A DNA stretch of 64,000 nt, from sequence record MN047793.1; one strand, 5' to 3'. The notes below the pieces were generated by a model. The model saw nothing but the letters and a program-made list of their open reading frames with translations, searched no databases and was not told the origin of the DNA. Position numbers and translations under genes: made by a program. Shown piece by piece: positions 6,454 to 62,689 of this stretch. Position 1 is the stretch's first letter; every line of letters begins with the position of its first letter.

Positions 6454-7134
6454 TCAATATCCGTGCATGTTTTTGATGATGGTAATTAATTCATCAGTGT
6501 TAGTTGCCAACTGTATCATCTTGGTGTACTTAAATCTATGCTCTTCCATAGTTTTAAGAATCTCATTGGCGGTTCGCTTAAGGTTCATAACCTCTTCTAC
6601 TACTTGGCTACGTGTCCATCCATTTAATTTTTTAGAAGCTTCGATAATTGGAAATTCATTCAAACTTTTCGGCTTAGGATTCATACCAAGATAACGTACT
6701 ACCTCATCAAACTTAGCGTTAATTAGACTAATATTTTCGGGGATTAAGTTGACAGCCCAATCAGAATGTAACGACTTCAATATATTCATCGCATCAGACT
6801 TAGCAATATTGATATCAGTCAAATCGATCTGATACTTTTTTTGTCTCATAGTTCGACTAGAGATAAACTCGCGTACTGGAGTTGCCTTTTCTAAGGCATC
6901 CAATTGGGTGGCTGCGTCTTCCTTAGTATCCACAGTAGATCGCTTTACACTTCTAACCTTCGTTCGCCAATCGTTCCATCTGGCACGTGATTCGAATGAA
7001 AGCTCATTATCTTCCAATTGTGTCCAGTCACTAGTGGATAACAATAGCTGTCGCTTTGCTATTACTTCTGCCCATTCTCTATCGATGTATTCCGACGTTT
7101 TTTCTAAACGACGAATTTTAATTTTCTCAACCAT
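6454..7134 (-). CDS. Tail fibre assembly chaperone-like protein
   Basis: LLLSTSDWTQLEDN...WNDWRTKVRSV matches the SDWTQLPD...W..YR..LRD motif of phage tail assembly chaperones; lies downstream of the fibre cluster. Confidence 0.65.
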   Translation of the reverse strand: MVEKIKIRRLEKTSEYIDREWAEVIAKRQLLLSTSDWTQLEDNELSFESRARWNDWRTKVRSVKRSTVDTKEDAATQLDALEKATPVREFISSRTMRQKKYQIDLTDINIAKSDAMNILKSLHSDWAVNLIPENISLINAKFDEVVRYLGMNPKPKSLNEFPIIEASKKLNGWTRSQVVEEVMNLKRTANEILKTMEEHRFKYTKMIQLATNTDELITIIKNMHGY

Positions 7135-7301
7135 TAGATTGAATCAAATTCTTTTAAGGATTGACCGATCATAGTGAAGTCAAATCCACTATCATCCACT
7201 TCAAATACTTTATTTCCCTGACGGGCCATATCTTCAATATTAACCGGCTTTACTGAATAGCCAACAATTACATCATCACTCGTTCTAACGAAAATAAACA
7301 T
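7134..7301 (-). CDS. Small hypothetical protein (55 aa, not in ORF track)
   Basis: MFIFVRTSDDVIVGYSVKP...EFDSI; GAGGA SD; TAATG coupling to next gene; CTAAATA at 7325..7331. Confidence 0.7.
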   Translation of the reverse strand: MFIFVRTSDDVIVGYSVKPVNIEDMARQGNKVFEVDDSGFDFTMIGQSLKEFDSI

Positions 7302-7350
7302 ACAAGTTCCTCAACTTATATGTCTATTTAGAGTGTCAAAAAATGATGTA

Positions 7351-7827
7351 TTACTGTGCAGATTGGTTGGTTCCAGAGCTTCCACCGCCGCCACCGCCGC
7401 CACCGCCGCCACCGCCACTACTTGCAGCAGCTACTACATAACGGTTAATTGAAACGTTATATGTCATACCACCAGTAACTACCTGACCAGCAGCATCAGT
7501 CACTTGATAATTCACACGTAATGTTCCACTAATAGTTAATGAGCACATATTAGATGATGTAAACCCGTAACCGAATTGTGGGGAAGCGCCACCGCCACCT
7601 GGGAATGCTGACATATTCAATGTCGCATTCGATGCAGTAGGAACTTGTGGATATGAAAATGTCGTGGTGTATGGTGCTTGCCCACCACTAATATTCAAGT
7701 TACAGAAATCTGTTGCAGTACCAGAACCACATGATGCAGAATATGATTGATTTTCTGTGAATGCTGCACAATCACCACTCATGTTTACTACAAGTTGTGG
7801 GATGATATTATTACATACAATTGCCAT
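7351..7827 (-). CDS. Cys-containing, Gly-tailed putative virion protein
   Basis: Beta-rich S/T/G/N composition, C-terminal poly-Gly; own AATAAATA motif at 7848..7855. Confidence 0.55.
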   Translation of the reverse strand: MAIVCNNIIPQLVVNMSGDCAAFTENQSYSASCGSGTATDFCNLNISGGQAPYTTTFSYPQVPTASNATLNMSAFPGGGGASPQFGYGFTSSNMCSLTISGTLRVNYQVTDAAGQVVTGGMTYNVSINRYVVAAASSGGGGGGGGGGGGSSGTNQSAQ

Positions 7828-7853
7828 AATTTACTCTTAATTCTCAATATTTA

Positions 7854-9440
7854 TTAGCAAGTACCCAGTACCTGACCGGTTTCGTTATCCACAATAGTAT
7901 AGTCACTAGCAATCTGCCAAGTGCGGTTATTACCGCTACTACTTACTAATACTGGAGTCATATTAATAGTAATCGTGAATGTACGGGAGCCTACAGTAAT
8001 AGTATCAGTAACTGTTTGTGCTGTTGTACCATAAACTTGACGATTATACGGAGTTTCACCTACACCATTTAATGTAACTTTCAGGTTTAATTGAATAGCT
8101 GGTGTAGCGTTATAATATTGTACATTTCCTCTTACTGGATTCAATGCGATAGTCTGCGTAGACACAAACGATGTGGCATTATTACAAGCACAGTATGACG
8201 TACACTGGTTATAATCACCATTACCACCTGATGAGTTGGTGAATGTGGTGAATGTTCCGCCAGGAACAGATGACGCTACGAAACCTGTGCAGTATCCACC
8301 ATTGAAGCCGTTTAGCGGTGGAGTACCCGGCATATTACGACATGCATAACGCGGTGCGGCTGTCGGAGTTGGTGTCGGAGTTGCTGGTTGCGGTGCTGGG
8401 CGACAAATCTGAAGGCTTGATTGGTTCGGGGGAATGAACGCTTGAGTTGTGTCTAATACCGGGCCAGCTGTCTCGTTTGCCGTAGATGCACATACGTTGG
8501 AGAAATCACCACTACGAGTGAATGTAAATGAATATCCAGTAGCTGGTGCAGGATGATTCAAGGAAACTGTATAACAAATCTGTGCGCCAGGAAGAACTTG
8601 ACCAGTAGGATTAGCAGTAATAGTCGTAGAGTAAACTAATTGAGTTACTGACGGCGTTAACGATGGTGCTGGTGTACCAGTACGAGTCATTGTTGGTGTT
8701 GGTGTCGGTGATACACCTGCCGTTGGTGTTACTGATGGAGTTGGTGATACTACTGGCGTAGATGTACGTGTCGGCGTCATCGTTGGAGTTGGTGATGGGG
8801 CCGGAGTAGCAGAAGGAATTGGCAATTGTGAGCCTAAATTCTTATTACCCTTAATACCTACGATCAGGTAGTTGGCACATCCAAATACAGCACTGGTGCC
8901 ACCTTCAGGATTATAGAACATAGTTACATTTGCTTGGTCATCCGTTACACACTGTAGGTATGTAAAGCTGGTGTCCATAACGAATGGCGTTACAATCCAT
9001 GCACATTCATCATAATCAAACACATAACCATGCTGGTTTTGTGGTTTAGGTAATTGGCTACCATGTGCAATTACGCCCCAGTTAGATGCAATATCTCCTA
9101 CCATACCTAATGCTAGCCATGATGAACCCGTCCAAGCATATAATGATTCTTGAGTAATATTGTACCAAAGTTGTCCCTGAACTGGCTTTGTCAATAGACG
9201 TTTAGTAGTATCAGCAATAAATGATGTTGAGGTTAAGTCAGGATTACCCGGTAATAGGGGGTTTTCTTTGCACGCAAAATTCTCCAGCAAGTGGAGAAAG
9301 TTAGCATTCATATCACGACCATATTCTAGTCGCTTTCTACCAAACAACGAAAGGTCAGTTGACGAATTATCAACGTTGGTCTCCGATACTACAATAGGAG
9401 CTTTATTCTTGTCGGTATATTTAACGGTATATTCTGTCAT
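7854..9440 (-). CDS. Fibre-like paralog 1: conserved N-module, Pro/Thr linker, Ig-like domain, second linker, Cys-rich tip
   Basis: Shared motifs GRKRLEYG, LLENFAC, GQLWYN, NWGVIAHG, ANYLIVGI; PTPTPT linkers. Confidence 0.65.
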   Translation of the reverse strand: MTEYTVKYTDKNKAPIVVSETNVDNSSTDLSLFGRKRLEYGRDMNANFLHLLENFACKENPLLPGNPDLTSTSFIADTTKRLLTKPVQGQLWYNITQESLYAWTGSSWLALGMVGDIASNWGVIAHGSQLPKPQNQHGYVFDYDECAWIVTPFVMDTSFTYLQCVTDDQANVTMFYNPEGGTSAVFGCANYLIVGIKGNKNLGSQLPIPSATPAPSPTPTMTPTRTSTPVVSPTPSVTPTAGVSPTPTPTMTRTGTPAPSLTPSVTQLVYSTTITANPTGQVLPGAQICYTVSLNHPAPATGYSFTFTRSGDFSNVCASTANETAGPVLDTTQAFIPPNQSSLQICRPAPQPATPTPTPTAAPRYACRNMPGTPPLNGFNGGYCTGFVASSVPGGTFTTFTNSSGGNGDYNQCTSYCACNNATSFVSTQTIALNPVRGNVQYYNATPAIQLNLKVTLNGVGETPYNRQVYGTTAQTVTDTITVGSRTFTITINMTPVLVSSSGNNRTWQIASDYTIVDNETGQVLGTC

Positions 9441-9462
9441 GGTTTGATCTTGTTAATAAGTC

Positions 9463-9470
9463 TATTTATA
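9463..9470 (-). promoter_or_regulatory. Late promoter TATAAATA
   Basis: Exact consensus 23 nt upstream of ATG 9440. Confidence 0.75.
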
Positions 9471-9480
9471 CTTACGCATT

Positions 9481-10113
9481 TCAGCCAATATTAGTTGGTG
9501 TCATTGGTACACCATTATTGTAATTACCACGAATACCAATAATCAAATAATTTGCTAAACCTGGGAGAGCATTACTCGTTCCAGATAATCTATATTGCAT
9601 AGTAACTAGTGCTGTAGAATCTGTACCACAGCTAATTAATGACGGCTTTCCTACTACACCAGCAGGAGATACCATCCATATACAATCATCGTACTCATAA
9701 GCTAGTCCAGTAATCGGACTAACCGGGCGAGGTAGACGCTGCCCATGCATTATACTTCCCCAGTTGGCAGCATAATTTTCTCTGAGAGGTAGTGGTTTCC
9801 ATTCTAGTCCGTCCCAATAATAAGTCATACTACGCGTACTATTAAACCAAAACTGACCAATCGTGGGCTTAGTTAATTGCTGTAATGATGTACGCGAAAT
9901 ATCTGGTACAGATTTCATGAAATCCGCACTCGGCTTTTCTGGACATGCGAAATTTTCTAGAATATTAAGAAGATTGCGATTAACACTCTCTCCATATTCT
10001 GGGGCAATTCGCCCCGCTAAAGTAACGTCAAGGCTTGAATCATCAAATTCTTGTTCGTTAACAGTGATAGATTGGATATTTCTATCCGTATGTTTGATGT
10101 TATATTCGGCCAT
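9481..10113 (-). CDS. Fibre-like paralog 2: conserved N-module only
   Basis: Same N-module motifs; ends right after GIRGNYNNG with no linker or tip. Confidence 0.65.
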   Translation of the reverse strand: MAEYNIKHTDRNIQSITVNEQEFDDSSLDVTLAGRIAPEYGESVNRNLLNILENFACPEKPSADFMKSVPDISRTSLQQLTKPTIGQFWFNSTRSMTYYWDGLEWKPLPLRENYAANWGSIMHGQRLPRPVSPITGLAYEYDDCIWMVSPAGVVGKPSLISCGTDSTALVTMQYRLSGTSNALPGLANYLIIGIRGNYNNGVPMTPTNIG

Positions 10114-10131
10114 AGTGATATTTATTCCCTA

Positions 10132-11424
10132 TTAAACGGGGGTTCCCGCCTGACCGTACAAGGAAATAGTTCCAGTAACAATCTGTGATGAATCATTCTT
10201 TCTACGAATCTGGAAATTTACATACATGTTCACAACGTCGCGAGTACTTGCAATCGACCATGACAAACCATTGCCTCCCATGTCATACCATACGGCACCG
10301 TTACCCGGTGTGTTAGGTCCTGCTGGAGTACTAAATGATGAGCTTGCAGGAAATTGAGCATCGAAGCTTGATACGAATGCCAATTCGAATTCGGATGGAC
10401 TTCCGCTGAGAAGCCATTGGGTTTTAGATAGCGATCCTCCGCGATTTTGTGAGTAACCTACCGTTCCGTTATTTCTAAATCCAACAGCTGCGCCAACTTG
10501 TGCGCCAGTGTTTACCTGTGACGCAGCAGAGTATTCACCACCTACAATGATATTAGATAGTGGCGGCTTGGGCGTCGGTGTAGGACTGGCGGGTGGGGTA
10601 CTCGATGGTGCTGGTGTATTGGATGGCACTGGAGTATTGGATGGCACTGGAGTATTGGATACTACCGGCGTTGGTGACATCGTTGAGGTTGGCGTCGGAG
10701 TTGGTGCTGCTGCCGCAGAACGTGTAATAGATGGTGTGACTGATAACGTTGGAGTAGGCGTTACCGTCGCCGTCATCGTAGGAGTAACGGTAGGAGTAGG
10801 TGATGGTGCCGGTACTGCTGGATATGGACCACTTACGGCATTGCCACCAATACCGATGATTAAGTAGTTTGCGGTACCATTATGGAATTCCGTTCCACCA
10901 GAATACCGATATCTAATCGTAACCGTAGCATTATCATCTGTAGTACAGTTTAAGAAACCTACTTTTCCTAGAATAATCGATGGGGCTACCGACCAAATAC
11001 ATTCATCGTAATCGAACACTCTACCTGTGATCGGACTAACTGGTTTCGGAATTTGTTGTCCATGAATTACCTGTCCCCAGTTGGCAGCATATGCTTCACG
11101 GGATGGTAATTGAATCCACTCAGTACCTGACCAGTGGAACATATTACCTCGTGAAGTATTGTACCAAAATTGCCCAACCGTTGGGTTAGTTAACTGACTT
11201 TTACTTGTTACAGAAAGATCAGGAGAAATTGGATTACTTTGACTAAGTTCCGGACATGCGAAATTCTCAAGGATATTTAATAAGTCCTCGTTTAGAATTT
11301 CACCGTATTCGCGCCTAATCTTCCCTAACAATGTAACATCTAGGTCAGTATCGTTTACACGTTTACCCGGAACAGTAATTGGTGGGAAGCTACTATCAGT
11401 CTTGTTTACAATATAATCGGCCAT
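10132..11424 (-). CDS. Fibre-like paralog 3: N-module, Pro/Thr linker, beta-rich tip
   Basis: Shared N-module; TPVPSN repeats; tip similar to that of 14893..16146. Confidence 0.65.
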
Positions 11425-11439
11425 ATCAATATTTACCTA

Positions 11440-12732
11440 TTAGCACCGGCCGATACCAGTGTTGAAGCTGTAATTTGCTGATAATGTACCATTTGCTGCA
11501 TTATTATCACCACTACTCTTATACCAATTAGCGTTCACAACCATTACGTGGTTTACGCCATTTAGGTTGAAGTTGAAGTTGAACGTACCTGATGAAGTGT
11601 TACTCACTGATGATGGAATACGAGCGAACAATTCAACGTCGCCAGTCGTCGCACCATTAGATGCTGATACTCTAACCACGAATCGAACCGATGGGAATGT
11701 ATTCGCCATATTCGTAAACACTCGGATAACACTACCACTACATGAGTGAGAATTAGGGCCACCAGCCGCACAATAACATGCAGATGGTGTTCCTACCTGA
11801 CTGCTTCTACGTAGCGGGGTCCATACCAATTGGGTGTCACCATATCCCATACAGAATGTAGATACCGTATAGCAGTATGTAATTGGTGCAGGAGTCGGTG
11901 TTGAACTTGGTACCGGTGTAGGACTTGGTACTGGCGTATTCGAAATCTGCGGTGTTGGTGACGGTACTGGTGTTGGACTGCGAGTTAGTGTAGGGGTAGG
12001 CGTAATAGTTGCCGTAATAGTTGCCGTCACCGTTGGCGTCGGAGATGGTGTTGACGTTTGTGTCGGTGCTGGTGTCGATGAAGGTGATGGGGTTGGGGTT
12101 GGTGACGGCATTAATGGCGGTACTACTACACCATTATTATGATTCCCATCAATACCAATAATCAAGTAGTTTGCGATACCGGGTACAATCATTTCTGTAT
12201 TGGCATAGCGATAATGCATCGTCACTTGGGATGACGCATTAGTATTACAATTCATTAAATCGATTGTGCCGTTAATTGCTGCTGGAGATACTGACCAAAT
12301 ACATTCATTATAGTCAAATACTCTACCTTGAAAGTTAACTGGCTTCGGTAACTGTTGACCATTCATAACTTGGCCCCAGTTAGCAGCATAGGCTCCACGA
12401 TTTGGTATAGGATTCCATCGAGTACCATCATAGTAGTACATCAATTCTCGTGATGAATTATACCAAAATTGCCCTATGGTAGGGTTATTCAGCTGAGTCT
12501 TTGTAACACTTAATAAATCTGGAGTAGCAGTGAAAATACCTGTTGTTGCAGGGTCTTCGGGACAAGAGAAATTTTCAAGCAGATTTAGCAAGTCTTCATT
12601 AACGCCTTCTCCATAATTCTGTAGGATTCTACCAAACAAAGTTACGTCGTATGAGGTCTCATCGACTGTATCTTCAGATACAGTCGTGGTAGGTACGTTG
12701 ATATCAGTGCGTCTAACAATATAATCAGTCAT
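11440..12732 (-). CDS. Fibre-like paralog 4: N-module, Pro/Thr linker, Cys-rich tip
   Basis: Shared N-module; tip begins YCYTVSTFC...[15 protein letters not shown]. Confidence 0.65.
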
Positions 12733-12739
12733 ATACTAA

Positions 12740-14860
12740 TTAGGTTCCTGAAGGTGTTGGTGTCACCGACGTAGTTCTAGTCACTGATGGTGTTGGTGTT
12801 ACTGGAGTACTTTTCGTCACGGACGGTGTTGGTGTCGGTGTTGGTGTCACCGGAATATTAGGTACAATGAATGCTACTTCCACTGATTCGCGGTTAGCTG
12901 GAAGAGTCTGCACGGTATCACCATTAGTAAACGCGGTACCAGTATAGTTGATGATGGACATTACCGTATTCATTGAATCAGCAACATTCAGAGCTAGAAC
13001 TGTATTATTACGTACGGCAATTGAATTTAATGCGGTAGTAGCAAATCGTCCAATCAGAGATGTAGTAGCTTCAACTACTAACTGTCCGGCATTGATGGTA
13101 ATACAATCAAATGCGGTACGTGTTGGAGCAGCGGTAGGCGGATATGCTATGAATAGCTTTCCTGTCACATTATCAAATGTCATGGTGGCAACTGTATCAG
13201 ACGCAATAGTAGAGTAATCTAATGTGTCTACTAAAGTGAAGCCCACACCATCTTCAAATCTGTATGCAATCAATTCATTATCGCCATTGATTACCGTAAT
13301 GAATTCTGAATCATATGCGGCTACTGAAATTGAGGGTGATGACACACTGAGGGTGTTAGAGTCTGCAACAAATGTGGTTCCATTAAACGTATGAGTGGTG
13401 AATATGTATGTGAATGGGTCCGCTTCGGTATTGTTTACCATCATCACTTTACCATTACCTAATTTATGCACAGAATGAACGTCACGACCATCGTATTTGA
13501 TGTTGGCTACCTCATTAAATGTGCTACCAGTAAATGTAAACGCACTCAGTTTAGTTTCGATGTTACTTACAGCGGTAGTGGTATTAATTGAGGCAACATA
13601 GATGAAATTGTCGTCCACTGTCAATTCACGTGAACGATATTCACTGCTGGAACCATCAATAGCATTGATGTTATATACGCCAGACCCCAAGTTTACGCCG
13701 AATGCAAATAAGCTGTTTTCTGTAGTAGAAACATAATATTGTCCAAACATCTTACCTACTTTCGGTTGAATTGGAGCAACCTGATAGTATGCAGGATTAT
13801 ACATGGATGTTGATGTATAAGATTGGTTGAATAATTTTGTTGTCCCTAACTTACGAACATAGTACGCTTCGTCGCCATAATCCGGGTTTAGCGGACGCAG
13901 TGCTACCGCAAAAATATCACCGTTATTTGGCACTAACGATGGGGTTACCGTTATGCTAGGCGTTGGAGTAAATGTAGTTGTAGGAGTAGGCGTAGGTGTT
14001 GTCGTTGATGTTGGGGTTAATGTCATCGACGCAGTTACTGTTGGCCCTGGGGTTCCTGTTGGTGATGGAGTCGGTGAAGCTTCACGTGTTGGTGATGGTG
14101 TAATAGTACGGGTCACTGTCGGCGTAGGCGTAACAGTAAATGTTGGGGTGATCGTTGGGGTGATCGTTGGGGTCGCAGAACGTGTTGGTGTTGGTGTTGC
14201 TGTAGCTACTGGAGTAGATGTTGGGGCCGCTCCTGATTGGCATCCGATGGTGCCACGATTTTCGTTATCACGAATACCGATAATTTGATAGTTAGCAAAA
14301 CCATTATTCAATGCAGTCTGGCCTTCAAATCGGAATTGCATTGTTACACGTGCAATAGGGTCACTAAAGCAATGAACAAAGTCTACTTCCTGGGGCAGGT
14401 TGAATGGCGATACGGTCCATGCACATTCATCAAGTGAAAAATTATATCCATCAGATGAAATTGGCATTGGAATAAATTGTCCATGGCCGATAACTCCAGA
14501 ATTACCAGCAACATCATTTACCGTACTAAGAGCACGCCATGTACCAAGGGATGTACGCACGAATGGTTTGTTCTGTGTACTGTTGTACCAAATCTGTCCT
14601 GTAGTAGGATTTTCTAATAAGTTACCAAATGCAGTGTTTAAGTTTGGAGTTCCTGGGTTACCCGGTTCTTCTGGGCACGCATAATGCTCAAGAACATGTA
14701 GAATGTTCTCGTTAAAGATTTCACCATACTCCAATCGGGTCTTACCAATAAGAGCAATGTCTAATTGGTCAGTAATTAATGCCGATTTCTGGATTTGGAT
14801 AGTTCCTTTGTCCAGATTGGTGTAATAGATCACGTAACTATTGTCTGCGCAGTTTGCCAT
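12740..14860 (-). CDS. Fibre-like paralog 5: N-module, Pro/Thr linker, large beta-rich (propeller-like) domain, terminal Pro/Thr tail
   Basis: Shared N-module; about 350-aa beta-strand-rich domain; GATAAATA at 14882..14889. Confidence 0.6.
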
Positions 14861-14892
14861 TTTAAATTCCGAATATCGTCTTATTTATCCCG

Positions 14893-16146
14893 TTACTGAA
14901 CGGTTACTTGTAACACAATCACACCGTTACCCATAACGAAATTATCCGCGTCGCGTCGCACTTGTACATTAAGGGTTAATGTATACGTTCCTGGGGACGT
15001 TGAAGAGTTTTGAATCTCCCACGTTCTATTGATTGAACAATTTAGCCATGTATCCAAAAACCCTGTAGGAGTTACATTACCTGATACGCGGGTCGCTCTA
15101 ACTGAATAATTTGCCGGGTCATCATTGATCAACCATCGGGTAGGAATGTTAAACCCATTCGAATCGTATACTACCACAAGCTGAGTATTTAAAATAGAAT
15201 ATCCTACCTTGAGAGTAGACCCTACCCCCGTGGTACGTGCCACAGTTTGATTACTTAAATCAACTGTAATAGGTGCTGGACGACTTGGTGTAATGGTTGG
15301 GGTGATCGTTGGTGTTGGGGTCGGTGTCGGTGTTACTGATCGGGTCTGTGACGGCACAGGTGTCCCACTACGGGTTACCGTTGGTGTTGGTGTGGCACTA
15401 CGGGTCTGTCCGGGTGTCCTCGTTAGTGTGGGTGTTGGGGACCCTGTAACCGATGGCGTCTTTGTTGGGGTCAACGTTGGAGTAAACGTAGGCGTTGGGG
15501 TTAATCCCGGAATATTTGGGGTCGGGAACGGAACGCCATGATTACGGGTGTCTCTAATTCCAATAATCTGATAATTGGCTAAGCCGTTAAAGAGTGTTGG
15601 ACTTCCAGCACGTCTATATTGAGTGAATACCCTAGCATTAGAATCGGTATAACATGAAAGAAATATAATGCGTTGAGGTTCGGCAAATCCGAATGGGGAA
15701 ACTACCCACGAACATTCAGAATATGGGTACACGTAACCGTCAATAGAACTTACTGGTCGTGGTAATTGTTGACCGTGAGCAATAACACCAGAATTCCCAG
15801 CTACTGTGTCATTCTGTGCAAGAGCCATCCATACAGCACCATTCCATGCATGTGGAGTGTTCGTAGTTTTATTATACCAAATCTGACCTACCGTCGGCTT
15901 AGACAATTGTGGTACATACACTTGGGACAAATCTGGAGTATTAGGCTTATCTGCGTCTTCTCGTGCAGCAAAGTGCTCAAGCAGATGAACGATGTTAGTA
16001 TTGAATACTTCACCATACTCCAGGCGGTTTTTACCAATAAACACGATATCACCGGCAGTGGTAACTACCGATGACCGGGGCACGACGATTGGGGTTTTAT
16101 CTTCGTCTGTGTAATAAACTTGGTAGCGAAAGCTCGGATTACTCAT
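14893..16146 (-). CDS. Fibre-like paralog 6: N-module, Pro/Thr linker, beta-rich tip
   Basis: Shared N-module; tip WLINDDPANYSVRATRVSG...VQVRRDAD. Confidence 0.65.
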   Translation of the reverse strand: MSNPSFRYQVYYTDEDKTPIVVPRSSVVTTAGDIVFIGKNRLEYGEVFNTNIVHLLEHFAAREDADKPNTPDLSQVYVPQLSKPTVGQIWYNKTTNTPHAWNGAVWMALAQNDTVAGNSGVIAHGQQLPRPVSSIDGYVYPYSECSWVVSPFGFAEPQRIIFLSCYTDSNARVFTQYRRAGSPTLFNGLANYQIIGIRDTRNHGVPFPTPNIPGLTPTPTFTPTLTPTKTPSVTGSPTPTLTRTPGQTRSATPTPTVTRSGTPVPSQTRSVTPTPTPTPTITPTITPSRPAPITVDLSNQTVARTTGVGSTLKVGYSILNTQLVVVYDSNGFNIPTRWLINDDPANYSVRATRVSGNVTPTGFLDTWLNCSINRTWEIQNSSTSPGTYTLTLNVQVRRDADNFVMGNGVIVLQVTVQ

Positions 16147-16172
16147 TAAATATTAGGTCTTTAAGATTCTAA

Positions 16173-16180
16173 TATTTATA
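16173..16180 (-). promoter_or_regulatory. Late promoter TATAAATA at the head of the fibre array
   Basis: Exact consensus 27 nt upstream of ATG 16146. Confidence 0.75.
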
Positions 16181-16183
16181 CAG

Positions 16184-16873
16184 CTAGATTTTTAATTCAC
16201 TAACGATCTTTCGCATCGTATTTAATGACTTAGGGTCCTTCTTAAAGTTTTCTGCCCACGTATTGTGATCGATTACCGTTCCGATCAAAATTTTTTGTTC
16301 AGGAGAAGCTTCCGTTCTCATGTGTGAGATGAATCCTTTACTAATAAGCAGAATCCATGGACTTAACTTTCTAGCTACTACTAGTCTCATTATATCCGAC
16401 GACTCCATATGCTCAAACACTTCATCCAATTCACATTCGAAATGGTTGGATAAATCATACATGGTATCGATAGTTATTGATGCCATCTCTATGGGCGTCT
16501 TACTTGCATCAAAATGATGTAGATAGTCCGTGTAGATATCCATACTCGTCCACTGGGTTGGCATTATACCTTTATCAATCATAAACATAATGTAATGCTT
16601 ACGATCTGGGATACCTACTCGACTACAGAATTTACAAAATTCTACGAATGCATTGAAGTATTTGGACTCCATGAATACGTCCTGGCCTTTAACTGCACGT
16701 CCCTGAGCATTCATCCATGCTTTATAACAGTAGTATGCAGACTTACCTTTATTAGTCTGCATATATTCGTGACGTGTTTTTGCCTCACATTTATGCTTAT
16801 CCAGCCTTACCTGAGTGGTGAGCTTTTTGCAGCAATGTGGACATTCAAAGAAAGGTTTAACGTGTCCCGTCAT
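16184..16873 (-). CDS. Hypothetical protein with N-terminal C2H2/C2HC-type zinc finger
   Basis: FECPHCCKKLTTQVRLDKHKC. Confidence 0.65.
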   Translation of the reverse strand: MTGHVKPFFECPHCCKKLTTQVRLDKHKCEAKTRHEYMQTNKGKSAYYCYKAWMNAQGRAVKGQDVFMESKYFNAFVEFCKFCSRVGIPDRKHYIMFMIDKGIMPTQWTSMDIYTDYLHHFDASKTPIEMASITIDTMYDLSNHFECELDEVFEHMESSDIMRLVVARKLSPWILLISKGFISHMRTEASPEQKILIGTVIDHNTWAENFKKDPKSLNTMRKIVSELKI

Positions 16874-17322
16874 TTTAGTTCAGTTTTTATCTTTTTGATT
16901 TGCTCTTTATCATACCCAAGGTCTTCTGCCATGTCTAGAACATCTTCCAATGTCAACCGTGGCAGATATCCAATAGCCTCAGACTTACTAATATCATAAT
17001 ACTGTGCTATAGCGCTAACTGATACGGCAGCTTTTTTATCTTTACCCTTTTTCTTGATCCAAGAATAACGTTTAGATTTGCTGTCAGAGCATGCCGTCAG
17101 AAGTAGGTACATTAGTTTTGGGTGCTTATGCAACTTAAAGACCAAGGGGTTCACAATACTATTGATCAATTGCAACTGCTTTGGGCTTCCACTAGAAGCC
17201 CATCGCATGGTAAGTAGAGGAACAAACCCTTTTTGCTGTTCCAACGAAAGATTCTCGATAAAGGAGAAATTACCCTTATCCATTTCCTTCAACGTCTCAA
17301 AAATGTCTAATTTCTCGCTCAT
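16870..17322 (-). CDS. gp62: Clamp loader small subunit (gp62-like)
   Basis: Position two genes after gp44; F.PLLTMRWAS, HPKLMY, YSWIKKK, IAQYYDISKSEA pattern. Confidence 0.65.
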   Translation of the reverse strand: MSEKLDIFETLKEMDKGNFSFIENLSLEQQKGFVPLLTMRWASSGSPKQLQLINSIVNPLVFKLHKHPKLMYLLLTACSDSKSKRYSWIKKKGKDKKAAVSVSAIAQYYDISKSEAIGYLPRLTLEDVLDMAEDLGYDKEQIKKIKTELK

Positions 17323-17633
17323 CGTTCTTTAGGAATTGATAGTTTAGCATTACAGAACTTGCAGGATATATGAGTTCCATTATGAATCAATGAATTCTTC
17401 GGATGAATACATTCTTTCACCATGGCCTGTCGCATCACAAACACCTTATCTAGAATTTCCTGACGGGCATATTGAAGAGCAATAATCTGCTCTTCTAGTG
17501 GACTCATTTCTTGAACCACTTGCTCGATCTTCTTCTGCCGTCTACTCCAAGACAACTTCTCATTCTTGTCTGTGAAGTTAGCAACATTCTTAAGATCGCG
17601 TTCAATTTGTTCCGGCGTCAATGGTGTACTCAT
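17319..17633 (-). CDS. Hypothetical coiled-coil protein with C-terminal zinc-binding motif
   Basis: CIHP...CKFC; translationally coupled on both sides. Confidence 0.6.
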   Translation of the reverse strand: MSTPLTPEQIERDLKNVANFTDKNEKLSWSRRQKKIEQVVQEMSPLEEQIIALQYARQEILDKVFVMRQAMVKECIHPKNSLIHNGTHISCKFCNAKLSIPKER

Positions 17634-59965: not shown

Positions 59966-62689
59966 TTAGAATTTAGACATATACGTTTCTTGCAGCGAAT
60001 CAATCTGCTGTTGGGCACGAGTGCGTACATTCTCATGAGCACGGTCTCTCTCTTCCCGTTCACGATCTTCTTTCTTAGCGCCCTTCATTTCACCTAATGC
60101 TTCTTCTTGGATAGCTACCAATCTATTCATAGGGTCTAACTGATTAGCAGGTATCGCGTTACCATCAGCATCACGTTGAATATTATTAACACCATCAATA
60201 GCTACATTAATACCATTATTACGCTTACCATCTACCAATGAGCTATTTCTACTACGAGTAGCCGCACTAACTAATTGATTAAGTTGCTGAACTGCTGCTG
60301 CACGATCAGCCTCTTCTTCCTGTACATTTCCGAAAATCGTACCGTTCCATGTACCAACCTGCCGCATACGGACAAATTCGTCTATATCGCTTTGGTCATA
60401 CTTTCCAGTTTTAGATACACGGTCAGCAATTCCAGACCATGAAGAACTGTTTTGGTTACCAGCCCAGTCAGAAATCGCAGTAGCTCCATATCCAAGTGGG
60501 TTCAGTATTTTACTTACGTTTTTGTAGAGGTTGTTGTCACTGTAGTAGGCATCCTGGCCTTGGCTACTCGCCATCGAGCCTATACCCCATCCTGCGGCTC
60601 CAGCAAGACCTACACCACCCAATCGTGATCCTACACCAGCTGCCGCCGCTCCAGCGCCACCACCGGCTCCTAGTCCGAACAAGCTACCTAATCGTGCTCC
60701 TAGTCCGGCTCCAGCGCCCGCACCGCCACCAGCCCCAAACACGGAGCCTACCGCACGAGACGCGTACTTACTAATCAAATACGTCTTTGCCACATCACCT
60801 ACCGTGTTAGCAGCACCCATTAGCATTCCGGCTCCTGGGGCTTTAGTACCTCCACGAATAGTTTCAGAAAATTCCTGCACGGCCAAATCGAATTTAGAAA
60901 CACTGTCCTGTTGTAACTTGGCATTAGTGTCCATAGTCTTCGTGAAATCCTCGAAACTGATGTTTCCACGAGAATTACGAATATTCTGTGCCGCAATGTC
61001 AGCCTCACCACCAGACGCAATATCATAACCAGCGTTTCTCTGGAAGATGTCTGAGATAAGTTGGGTACGCATAAAATCACTAATACCTGCGGAGAATCCA
61101 CCGTTTCGTGCAGTATTAGATGAACCGGCCCGGTTCGCATTATTAAAACTATTGCGACGGGCACGTAGTTCAGCATATGAAGTCTTTTCACTAGCATTCA
61201 AATCGAAACCAGCATCACCACGTCTAAGGATATCGGTCTCTAATGAGGATTGTGTTCCACCTTGGCGGACAAATTCATTAGATGCCAATTGGGAGAATAT
61301 ACCCTTACGGATTCTGTCCCCAATATCGGCATATCGTGCATTATGACGCATCTGTTCCTGTTGCTGCATGAATTGGATGTCATAACCCATCCACTTCACT
61401 AACTGCATTCTAGTTGCTAATTCTTTTTGGATGGCAGCTTGTTGTTCTAAAGTACCCGCCTTACTGAAATCTAATAAATTAGATGTCTGGGTAGAGTAGT
61501 CCTGAATCATTGCAGCAGCTTCTTGAATCGTTCCACCAAATGATTGTTGGATGCGTTGAGCATCCTTTTGTAGGGTAGAGTTCAAATCGCTGTCAAATTT
61601 ACGGCCAGTACGATACGCACTACGCATCATCCCTTGGGTAAAGTCTAAGGCTTCCTTACCTGTGATACCAACCATCTTAGCCTGATCAGCCCAAGTCTTT
61701 AGTGTACCGTCAGAAACCGAATTAACCCGCTTACCAAATTCGCTGATTACATTTAGTACATCACGATTCGTAGCACGGAATTGGTTCAATTCATCTGAAG
61801 ATACGCCCATACCAAACGACTGCATGTACTGGTTTTCTGTAAAACCTGTCTGTAGTCTTGATTGTATGAAGTTAGGTACCGACTTTACATCATTGATTGC
61901 TCCCGAGCCAATACTCTTAGTGAAATTGGACAAAGAACTCTGAAAGTCTTTTTTGGCCTTATTTAAACTATTAGTAAGATCCGCAAGGAAGTTTTTATTT
62001 AACGCACTAATAGCAGCATACTGTTCATTTAACTGCTCAACACCTAAACGGGCATTATCCGTTAACTTGGTACCAGAGTTTGACAGCAGACGTTTTAGAA
62101 ATTTATCTAATGGTCCATTAATAAATGCATCAGCACCATGGACGCCACTTTGCTCAACCTTGGCACGTGCGTCCTGAATTTTTTTCAGCTTGGCATTAAA
62201 CACTACCTGATTAGCAGCATAATGCTCTTGGTTTTGAACAAGGTCATTAACTGCTTCCGTTAATTCTGCATAGTCAGAATTTAGTTCAGTTAGCTTCTTT
62301 ACGTTACCGCCGACTGCCTTGATATAATCCATACCTTGCTTCGCAGCTTTAGCATAAATCTGACTTTGGGTTTCAGCGGCATTTTGAACAACATCCTCTA
62401 AATTAGAAAATGCTTTATTCAATGGGTTTATGGACTTAATGGTTTCCTTAAAATGGTCAGCAATACTTCTTCCACCACTTTTGAATGACTGCTGAAGCTC
62501 TTCTAAATTTTTAGCAATAGCAAGAAGATTTTCATTTGTCTGTTGGATGGATTTATTACTACCTCCACGGCTTGGTCGAGAGCTACCAGACCCATTATTA
62601 CCCGAAAATGAGTTTCGGCTCTTTAGTTGGTTAGTTAGTTCTTCAACCGCTTTTCGCAGTAATTCTAAATTTCGATCAGTCTGTGACAT
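59966..62689 (-). CDS. Large helical virion protein, tape-measure-like
   Basis: 907 aa, long alpha-helical/coiled-coil character, Gly/Ala-rich hydrophobic stretch; AATAAATA at 62719..62726. Confidence 0.45.
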   Translation of the reverse strand: MSQTDRNLELLRKAVEELTNQLKSRNSFSGNNGSGSSRPSRGGSNKSIQQTNENLLAIAKNLEELQQSFKSGGRSIADHFKETIKSINPLNKAFSNLEDVVQNAAETQSQIYAKAAKQGMDYIKAVGGNVKKLTELNSDYAELTEAVNDLVQNQEHYAANQVVFNAKLKKIQDARAKVEQSGVHGADAFINGPLDKFLKRLLSNSGTKLTDNARLGVEQLNEQYAAISALNKNFLADLTNSLNKAKKDFQSSLSNFTKSIGSGAINDVKSVPNFIQSRLQTGFTENQYMQSFGMGVSSDELNQFRATNRDVLNVISEFGKRVNSVSDGTLKTWADQAKMVGITGKEALDFTQGMMRSAYRTGRKFDSDLNSTLQKDAQRIQQSFGGTIQEAAAMIQDYSTQTSNLLDFSKAGTLEQQAAIQKELATRMQLVKWMGYDIQFMQQQEQMRHNARYADIGDRIRKGIFSQLASNEFVRQGGTQSSLETDILRRGDAGFDLNASEKTSYAELRARRNSFNNANRAGSSNTARNGGFSAGISDFMRTQLISDIFQRNAGYDIASGGEADIAAQNIRNSRGNISFEDFTKTMDTNAKLQQDSVSKFDLAVQEFSETIRGGTKAPGAGMLMGAANTVGDVAKTYLISKYASRAVGSVFGAGGGAGAGAGLGARLGSLFGLGAGGGAGAAAAGVGSRLGGVGLAGAAGWGIGSMASSQGQDAYYSDNNLYKNVSKILNPLGYGATAISDWAGNQNSSSWSGIADRVSKTGKYDQSDIDEFVRMRQVGTWNGTIFGNVQEEEADRAAAVQQLNQLVSAATRSRNSSLVDGKRNNGINVAIDGVNNIQRDADGNAIPANQLDPMNRLVAIQEEALGEMKGAKKEDREREERDRAHENVRTRAQQQIDSLQETYMSKF

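Follow-up and report, generated by a model that had tools for sequence, protein, structure and literature searches.

We describe here a tandem array of six genes in Xanthomonas phage Xoo-sp13 (MN047793.1), a jumbo myovirus with a genome of 309,023 bp infecting Xanthomonas oryzae pv. oryzae, and we interpret their products as late-expressed, flexible virion fibres, probably O-glycosylated, which would share one adaptor and carry several binding tips; a probability of roughly 0.55 is given to this interpretation. In the proposed mechanism a two-part head would attach, probably as a trimer, to the product of Xoosp13_299 at the baseplate. A stalk rich in Pro, Thr and Ser would replace the rigid trimeric shaft and hold a small globular tip at a distance of tens of nanometres, while a cytoplasmic cassette of the phage (PF11397/GT60-type, HtrL-like, weak GT2 and carbamoyltransferase genes) would glycosylate the stalks and make them mucin-like. 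The tips, two related beta-sandwiches, two Cys-rich ones and one of 350 amino acids (aa), would bind different host structures and make the first reversible contact.

The analysed stretch of DNA, called the window throughout, comprises 64,000 nucleotides (nt) of the record, with window positions equal to record positions minus 124,000; over window positions 7300-17400 identity to the record is 100%. According to the annotation, T4-like replication genes, terminase, major capsid protein, portal and a late sigma factor are located in or near it. The array consists of six intact open reading frames (ORFs) arranged head to tail on the minus strand, Xoosp13_227 to Xoosp13_222 (slots 1 to 6), each annotated as "hypothetical protein"; none of them has internal stops or frameshifts, and no N-terminal signal peptide was found in the six translations. 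Their parts are as follows.

14893-16146, minus strand: slot 1, Xoosp13_227, 417 aa, phrog_15511 (E 3.8e-133); N-module 15535-16146, Pro/Thr stalk 15259-15534, small beta tip 14896-15258
12740-14860, minus strand: slot 2, Xoosp13_226, 706 aa, phrog_15511; N-module 14237-14860, stalk 13922-14236, distal domain of ~350 aa 12872-13921
12743-12871, minus strand: second Pro/Thr tail, at the C-terminal end of slot 2
11440-12732, minus strand: slot 3, Xoosp13_225, 430 aa, phrog_15511, without its own promoter-like motif; N-module 12133-12732, stalk 11857-12132, Cys-rich tip with C-terminal Cys 11443-11856
10132-11424, minus strand: slot 4, Xoosp13_224, 430 aa, phrog_15511, modelled with AlphaFold; N-module 10837-11424, stalk 10543-10836, all-beta tip 10135-10542
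9481-10113, minus strand: slot 5, Xoosp13_223, 210 aa, intact ORF of the N-module alone, without stalk and tip
7854-9440, minus strand: slot 6, Xoosp13_222, 528 aa, phrog_15511; N-module 8835-9440, stalk 8622-8834, Cys-rich distal part of ~255 aa 7857-8621

All six proteins match phrog_15511, a PHROGs family of unknown function, with E-values from 2.2e-93 to 1.2e-153, and the 528-aa protein of slot 6 spans the entire profile. The N-module of ~195-200 aa is 37-53% identical to the 9481 protein (slot 5) and has 40 invariant columns, including two invariant Cys. The ORFs, their alignment and the phrog_15511 matches thus bear out the first-pass annotation, which had described six tandem paralogs with a common N-module, Pro/Thr linkers and differing C-termini; every N-module motif quoted there was found in the proteins. 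Pfam returned nothing for the six proteins except one borderline Barwin match. Over window positions 8001-16000 the GC content is 0.41-0.45 versus ~0.38-0.40, and the GC skew is +0.06 to +0.12 versus negative values elsewhere; this displacement probably stems from ACN and CCN, the codons of the minus-strand stalks, rather than from a foreign origin.

The head can be divided into two parts, because distant relatives from IMG/VR share with it only residues ~4-108, at the N-terminus of their ORFs. Judged from these alignments, the first part (~1-105) is an ancient docking domain common to tail-fibre-like proteins, and the second (~110-195) is a beta-sandwich of the full-length N-module family. 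In the AlphaFold model of the slot 4 (10132) protein, based on an alignment of 105 sequences, residues 1-195 have block means of the predicted local distance difference test (pLDDT) of 78-97, and the head is built of short strands at the N-terminus, followed by one helix, a beta-hairpin region and a five-strand sandwich. A profile built from the six heads was run against 1.84 billion proteins and its matches were counted as cluster representatives: there were 4,850 of them at E<=1e-3, of which 220 reached E<=1e-30. Among the best 150 representatives the match begins within the first 22 residues in all but two. Total lengths in the family vary from 196 to 1,786 aa, and forms consisting of the N-module alone (196-212 aa) recur; one of these could not be located on any contig.

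What follows the docking domain in the distant relatives points to tail fibres: Phage Tail Collar PF07484 (E 1e-15 to 1e-18), Peptidase_G2/IMC, PHROG tail-fibre families and repeat-rich shafts. In a set of 86 distant same-head proteins the distal Pfam domains were Hint_2 (three proteins) and, in few, PT-HINT, intein-splicing, DUF285 and Gly_rich_2, with fn3 and SprB repeats in one protein each, most tips having no Pfam family. The docking domain occurs in 93 of 50,697 cultured-phage records, mostly of jumbo phages. PA5oct gp358 (annotated as a tail-fibre/gp10-like protein) and gp359 both begin with it and are recorded as virion-detected by electrospray ionisation tandem mass spectrometry, while K64-1 gp071, CBB_231 and 121Q gp577, which also carry it, are annotated as virion or structural proteins. 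The common anchor proposed at first pass therefore gains indirect support from homology to the N-termini of tail-fibre and tail-collar proteins and to virion proteins of jumbo phages. An IMG/VR scan gave more than 514 stretches encoding relatives, in which tandem arrays of 3-5 genes, each starting with this domain, are usual (four genes in locus L076).

Foldseek comparison of the full slot 4 model with BFVD returned its own family and uncharacterised phage proteins of 134-147 aa at a template modelling (TM) score of ~0.7. An earlier AlphaFold run on the six-sequence alignment had been poor (pLDDT 59.5) and served as a head-only control; it gave weak matches to tail-collar, IMC-containing and tail-fibre proteins, and the small proteins were gone. 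Since the latter vanish with the head-only query, the small proteins are most likely neighbours of the tip and the fibre proteins neighbours of the head, as far as can be judged from a poor head-only model and matches given without query ranges. Matches to pilus adhesin lectin domains (Foldseek against PDB, E>=3e-4, TM<=0.45) were not taken as homology. Another candidate, PF26696 (PTL_trimer), was "faint" in precomputed matches, gave none at E<=10 in a local hmmscan and is mentioned in no paper.

Directly upstream of docking-domain arrays a conserved protein of ~200 aa is encoded, which belongs to phrog_11259 and has no Pfam family. The partner gene was present in 58 of 79 IMG/VR loci, every time on the strand of the first fibre gene and with its end less than ~110 nt before that gene. 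The same adjacency is seen for PA5oct gp357 (detected by mass spectrometry), CBB_230 (annotated as structural) and K64-1 gp070. The family comprises at least 8,000 proteins, none of them named. Its homolog in Xoo-sp13 is Xoosp13_299, a 402-aa ORF at record positions 218,700-219,908 (L086:20701-21909), which is located in the baseplate module after the baseplate wedge genes and Xoosp13_296, the gene of a 3,245-aa protein; it retains both ends of the family and has an insertion of ~170 aa. Homologs align from residue 5 of the 402-aa ORF, so the start annotated for Xoosp13_299 (218,874) seems to be placed too far downstream. Owing to the conserved adjacency and the presence of family members in virions of relatives, the phrog_11259 protein is the best candidate for a shared socket, a role that in Xoo-sp13 would fall to Xoosp13_299. 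The single socket postulated at first pass has in this way received a concrete, if indirectly supported, candidate.

Five of the six proteins have a stalk of 71-105 residues with 65-71% Pro+Thr+Ser (Pro 22-29%, Thr 22-38%, Ser 8-14%; in slot 1, 26%, 33% and 8%, respectively). Stalk residues 196-267 of slot 4 have pLDDT below 50 and are predicted to be disordered. By composition and prediction the segment between head and tip thus does not look like a trimeric fibrous shaft of beta-helix, coiled-coil or collagen-like type and corresponds to a mucin-like linker, i.e. a Pro/Thr/Ser-rich, low-complexity, disordered spacer. Across the family, at least 45% Pro+Thr at residues 201-260 was found in 83 of the 116 representatives long enough to judge. 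The stalk-coding regions of the paralogs share no long identical DNA tracts that would indicate repeats or recent conversion, only low-complexity similarity of 60-78%, and because of this the stalk composition looks selected and not produced by recent slippage or conversion.

When ~128 kb of the Xoo-sp13 genome was scanned for Pro/Thr-rich stretches, the only annotated genes found were those of the five stalks and of the giant baseplate-adjacent protein, at its C-terminus; a 159-aa plus-strand frame at 60549-61025, where no gene is annotated, also passed the threshold. The C-terminus of this giant protein, Xoosp13_296 (L086:18400-19410), carries a pair of Pro/Thr spacers together with a small segment containing Cys and a terminal domain of ~110 aa. 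As its end also bears such spacers, Pro/Thr tethers seem to be a general device of Xoo-sp13 appendages.

Beside the adaptor gene there is a set of genes (L086:20105-28914) with matches to glycan-modifying enzymes.

Xoosp13_298: weak GT2 match (E 1.2e-3)
Xoosp13_300: HtrL_YibB (E 2.5e-17)
Xoosp13_303: carbamoyltransferase
Xoosp13_304: PF11397, "Glycosyltransferase (GlcNAc)", matched over the whole model (E 1.5e-76)

Among the cultured-phage records the PF11397 enzyme is present in Xoo-sp13, XacN1, CM1 and RAS14 only, that is, in the phages with the stalk-bearing array. A contig of 344,881 bp from the Joint Genome Institute (JGI) combines a three-gene stalk array, a chaperone gene and an adaptor homolog (51% identity) beside a PF11397-HtrL cassette; a second metagenomic contig (196,729 bp) with array and glycosyltransferase is implied by two homolog tables only. 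The cassette of the distant metagenomic relative lies at L094:10001-15196. Next to the PF11397 gene, Xoo-sp13 and XacN1 have a carbamoyltransferase as glycan-tailoring enzyme, and that distant relative has a sulfotransferase (PF17784) in its place. IMG/VR pattern scans for the glycosyltransferase, with a single-protein and a three-sequence pattern, gave 0 and 1 loci, the patterns being too narrow.

Because the fibre proteins have no signal peptide, any glycosylation of the stalks would need to be cytoplasmic and phage-encoded. In protists, GT60 enzymes start mucin-type O-glycosylation on Ser/Thr-rich domains (PMC8724618), and XacN1, which has two glycosyltransferases, shows at least two Schiff-positive bands in its virions (PMC5852040). 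The suggestion made at first pass that the proteins may be glycosylated is thus strengthened indirectly, by the Schiff-positive virion bands of XacN1 and by the co-distribution of cassette and array; as evidence that the phage cassette O-glycosylates the stalks, this is suggestive, not conclusive.

The tips of slots 1 and 4, whose likeness had been noticed at first pass, were confirmed as related by profile-profile comparison (hhalign probability 97.2%, E 3e-11, 108 columns), while BLASTP sees nothing; together with the slot 4 and 5 tips of XacN1 they form one beta-sandwich superfamily (probability 95.7-97.2%). In the model the slot 4 tip has eight strands with pLDDT block means of 80-97. It is present in 15 metagenomic relatives; BLASTP at E<=1e-3 gave no match to it in XacN1 or RAS14. 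The slot 3 tip has three Cys invariant in its XacN1 and RAS14 orthologs, the last residue among them, and the distal part of slot 6 contains a short inner Pro/Thr spacer and likewise a C-terminal Cys; profile similarity between the two is weak (probability 34%, E 4e-4). The last codons of slot 6 (7857-7859) and slot 3 (11443-11445) both specify Cys, and a disulfide after release is possible. For the slot 2 distal domain no Pfam family, PDB relative or internal repeats were found. Its earlier label "propeller-like" found no support: Pfam gave no match, and in three orthologs self-alignment scores did not exceed those of shuffled sequences. Neither Ig, fn3 nor Big families were found by Pfam in the six proteins, which gives no sign of the tandem-Ig organisation, with capsid-binding module, of Hoc-like proteins.

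Some tips might be enzymes, polysaccharide depolymerases or wall hydrolases, as on fibres of Klebsiella jumbo phages; the 350-aa domain of slot 2 is big enough for a catalytic fold, one tip reached the Barwin (double-psi beta-barrel) cut-off, and jumbo-phage relatives bear many depolymerase fibres (PMC10253068). We regard this as improbable. Neither Pfam nor PDB sequence search revealed an enzyme family in any tip, the majority of tips are beta-sandwiches of 120-140 aa, and the nearest predicted structures are small uncharacterised phage proteins. The Barwin match (PF00967) of the slot 3 tip was rejected: it scored 21.1 bits against a cut-off of 21, nine of ten orthologs gave nothing and the tenth 15.3 bits.

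The array was compared in the relatives XacN1, Stenotrophomonas phages RAS14 and CM1 and metagenomic contigs; no literature on RAS14 or CM1 was found. The array occupies the same place, after the clamp-loader genes, in XacN1 (ORF237-232), RAS14, CM1 and the metagenomic contigs, and each head is closest to the head of the same slot in the other phages. Between Xoo-sp13 and XacN1 the heads are 60-80% identical (77-80% for slots 1, 2 and 6, 68% for slot 3, 60-62% for slots 4 and 5), the flanking genes 60-85%, and the tips 38-68% or replaced. The tips of slots 1, 2, 3 and 6 are 51%, 38%, 59% and 68% identical to those of XacN1, and 39%, 29%, 31% and 54% to those of RAS14. The tips had been called interchangeable, which is true only in part: those of slots 1, 2, 3 and 6 are orthologous in Xoo-sp13, XacN1 and RAS14, whereas those of slots 4 and 5 were replaced, duplicated or lost. 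The slot 4 and 5 tips of XacN1 are 75% identical to each other, and the RAS14 tips differ again. The slot 5 protein of Xoo-sp13 (210 aa) is shorter than its orthologs from XacN1 (430 aa) and RAS14 (347 aa), which, on comparison of the sequences, counts as one loss of the distal part. Five genes make up the array in a close metagenomic relative and three in a distant one. Accordingly, the comparison among relatives proposed at first pass reveals an array that is not invariant, with turnover in slots 4 and 5. The RAS14 slot 5 ortholog (L003:9001-10044) is annotated as "D-alanyl-D-alanine carboxypeptidase", an activity of which its paralogs and orthologs show no hint.

Expression of the array late in infection is likely, owing to positioned TAAATA motifs and the annotated late sigma factor. 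On the minus strand of the window, 20 of 37 TAAATA copies are located within 60 nt upstream of one of the 68 annotated starts, typically 26-32 nt before the ATG, including those of portal, terminase and other structural genes; the motif usually occurs as A/TATAAATA. The copies at the array are listed below.

16173-16180, minus strand: late-promoter-like motif TATAAATA, slot 1
14882-14887, minus strand: TAAATA at usual spacing, slot 2
11430-11435, minus strand: TAAATA 11 nt before ATG, slot 4
10119-10124, minus strand: TAAATA 11 nt before ATG, slot 5
9463-9470, minus strand: TAAATA at usual spacing, slot 6
7848-7853, minus strand: TAAATA at usual spacing, next gene

Slots 1, 2 and 6 and the following gene of a 158-aa protein thus have TAAATA at the spacing typical of this phage, as expected of a T4-type late-gene motif. 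That five of the six genes have their own TAAATA, as noted at first pass, holds for all except 11440 (slot 3), with typical spacing (27-32 nt) in three and 11 nt in two. The positions, including the 11-nt spacing, are kept in XacN1, RAS14 and a metagenomic relative. Such a short distance leaves no room for a normal leader, and leaderless transcripts or another role of the motif are possible.

A gene resembling tail-fibre chaperones was also reported to follow the array. It is present, as Xoosp13_219 (6454-7134, minus strand, 226 aa), but lies three genes downstream of the array and not adjacent to it. Its family matches are weak: Phage_tail_APC at E 1.8e-5, with a score of 24.9 bits that falls short of the cut-off (26.6), and the tail assembly chaperone family of PHROG at 3.8e-10. 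The gene is syntenic in XacN1 and RAS14, and its counterpart behind the array of the 345-kb distant relative clearly matches PF16778 (Phage_tail_APC) and has 44% identity over 86 residues to Xoosp13_219.

A number of points weigh against flexible glycosylated fibres at the baseplate. PDB sequence and profile searches with the head, and searches with the adaptor family and three tips, returned no solved relative, and Foldseek of the slot 4 model against PDB gave weak generic beta-sandwich matches only; a PDB search with the glycosyltransferase returned no relative either. TAAATA of slots 4 and 5 stands, unlike the others, 11 nt before the ATG. The cultured phages with array and glycosyltransferase form one clade, so that the co-occurrence amounts to about one independent observation plus two metagenomic contigs. 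PF11397 is an abundant family (6,851 proteins at E<=1e-10), which we take to cover both the GT60 polypeptide alpha-GlcNAc-transferases (GlcNAc, N-acetylglucosamine) and the Skp1 hydroxyproline GlcNAc-transferase, and the enzyme could act on DNA, capsid or host glycans.

Moreover, the virion evidence concerns proteins of relatives and none of the six Xoo-sp13 proteins. This would agree with a non-particle function, in which soluble late products, freed at lysis, would bind to the envelope of the host or to exopolysaccharide and act, for instance, as decoys or matrix modifiers; Pro/Thr linkers are indeed typical of secreted glycan-active enzymes. In XacN1 no tail fibres were recognised by negative-stain microscopy or homology (PMC5852040), which points in the same direction. 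We consider soluble products very unlikely, as the translations have no N-terminal signal peptide, proteins with a related N-domain belong to the virion in PA5oct, K64-1 and CBB, and such arrays come with a conserved partner gene that is virion-associated and with a fibre-chaperone-like gene.

The main alternative is decoration at another site of the virion, i.e. capsid, neck or tail sheath, by Hoc-like or whisker-like proteins serving non-specific adherence to polysaccharide matrices or protection of the particle and not receptor binding. The docking-domain protein of RaK2, ORF065, is outside the ten proteins that form the adsorption complex according to the abstract of PMC10253068, and because of this the domain may mark another virion site. 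The genes of K64-1 gp071 and CBB_231, which are near tail genes, adjoin a tail sheath stabilizer/completion gene, and the Xoo-sp13 array is ~70 kb away from the baseplate module, beside replication genes. A flexible stalk with a small domain, as modelled, would also be closer to decoration proteins than to rigid fibres. Against decoration, the docking domain precedes tail-collar or tail-fibre domains in many relatives, the Xoo-sp13 homolog of the partner lies within the baseplate module, a tail-fibre chaperone-like gene comes after the array here and in the distant relative, and the giant baseplate-adjacent protein has the same type of Pro/Thr spacer. On balance we hold decoration to be unlikely, though less so than soluble products or enzymatic tips, and keep fibres at the baseplate as the preferred interpretation.

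Multi-tailspike adsorption sets are known from branched tailspikes of CBA120 and G7C type. These sets and the branched fibres of RaK2/K64-1 (PMC10253068) resemble the array of Xoo-sp13 in having receptor-binding genes side by side, with conserved N-terminal and divergent distal parts. In contrast to them, the Xoo-sp13 heads are six copies of one module and not interlocking different adaptor domains, the stalk is a disordered Pro/Thr segment and not a rigid trimeric shaft or beta-helix, and the tips are small and without depolymerase signature; no sequence or profile match to these systems was returned. PA5oct gp358/gp359, K64-1 gp071, CBB_231 and the IMG/VR proteins are alike in their N-terminus of ~105 aa, tandem arrays and partner gene. 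They differ in continuing into repeat-rich shafts, Collar or IMC domains, whereas members of the Xoo-sp13 family have, in addition, a second beta-sandwich, 20 extra residues inserted into the docking domain and the Pro/Thr stalk, and the partner gene is found away from the array, in the baseplate module, and is enlarged by the ~170-aa insertion.

Pro/Thr linkers are extended spacers of secreted glycanases and are often O-glycosylated. Such linkers of secreted glycoside hydrolases (Cellulomonas and Xanthomonas type) are similar to the stalks in composition, length and tether role, but the Xoo-sp13 proteins have no signal peptide and their flanking domains are not catalytic or carbohydrate-binding module families. 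Mycobacteriophages glycosylate virion proteins on Ser/Thr-rich stretches with phage-encoded enzymes. A further example of virus-encoded glycosylation is the capsid of chlorovirus PBCV-1, as cited in PMC5852040. In both cases glycosyltransferases of the virus modify virion proteins on Ser/Thr-rich stretches, as proposed here; however, they act on capsid or tail tube, while the Xoo-sp13 candidates are fibre stalks and the enzyme family is different. To the protist GT60 pathway (PMC8724618) Xoo-sp13 is similar in the full-length PF11397 match and in the Thr/Ser/Pro-rich candidate substrates in the same genome. The setting of a bacterial virus and the tailoring by carbamoyl- or sulfotransferase and HtrL-like enzymes have no protist counterpart.

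Docking domain, near-obligatory partner, chaperone-like gene, mucin-like stalks and co-distributed cassette make up an undescribed larger system. A broader proposal, which we advance only tentatively and consider doubtful at present, is that such phages make mucins of their own: a GT60-type enzyme would start O-glycans on the stalks, followed by lineage-specific HtrL-like, carbamoyl or sulfo tailoring; the resulting "tentacle" fibres would plug through one widespread N-domain into a phrog_11259 baseplate adaptor, and "fibreless" jumbo phages would have fibres that negative stain and homology miss.

Two neighbouring genes deserve a comment.

7351-7827, minus strand: gene of a 158-aa protein that contains Cys and a Gly run; it follows the array directly and has its own TAAATA
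16870-17112, minus strand: Xoosp13_229, annotated as 80 aa

The 158-aa protein, for which no Pfam or PHROG family was found, shares 73% identity with residues 1-131 of XacN1 ORF231 (285 aa) and 51% with its RAS14 counterpart. XacN1 ORF231 (L002:11942-12799) has ~150 residues more beyond the Gly run, in which Pfam finds nothing; a Hint-like extension was suspected there and dropped for lack of Pfam support. BFVD entries of exactly 158 and 285 aa are weak structural neighbours of the fibre model. The start of Xoosp13_229 is probably annotated too far downstream, because the ORF 16870-17322 of 150 aa, with weak clamp-loader family matches, shows 61% full-length identity with XacN1 ORF239.

The array is the obvious candidate for the adsorption apparatus of the XacN1 group, described so far without recognisable tail fibres (PMC5852040), whose members have been considered as agents against rice blight, citrus canker and Stenotrophomonas. 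The docking domain and its partner are both unnamed, without Pfam family or solved relative, and are encoded almost always side by side, so naming and locating this pair would annotate much phage dark matter and aid the prediction of receptor-binding genes. If true, phage-encoded mucin-type glycosylation of stalks would be new for bacterial viruses and would bear on the stability of the particle, its stickiness to polysaccharide matrices and the recognition of the host.

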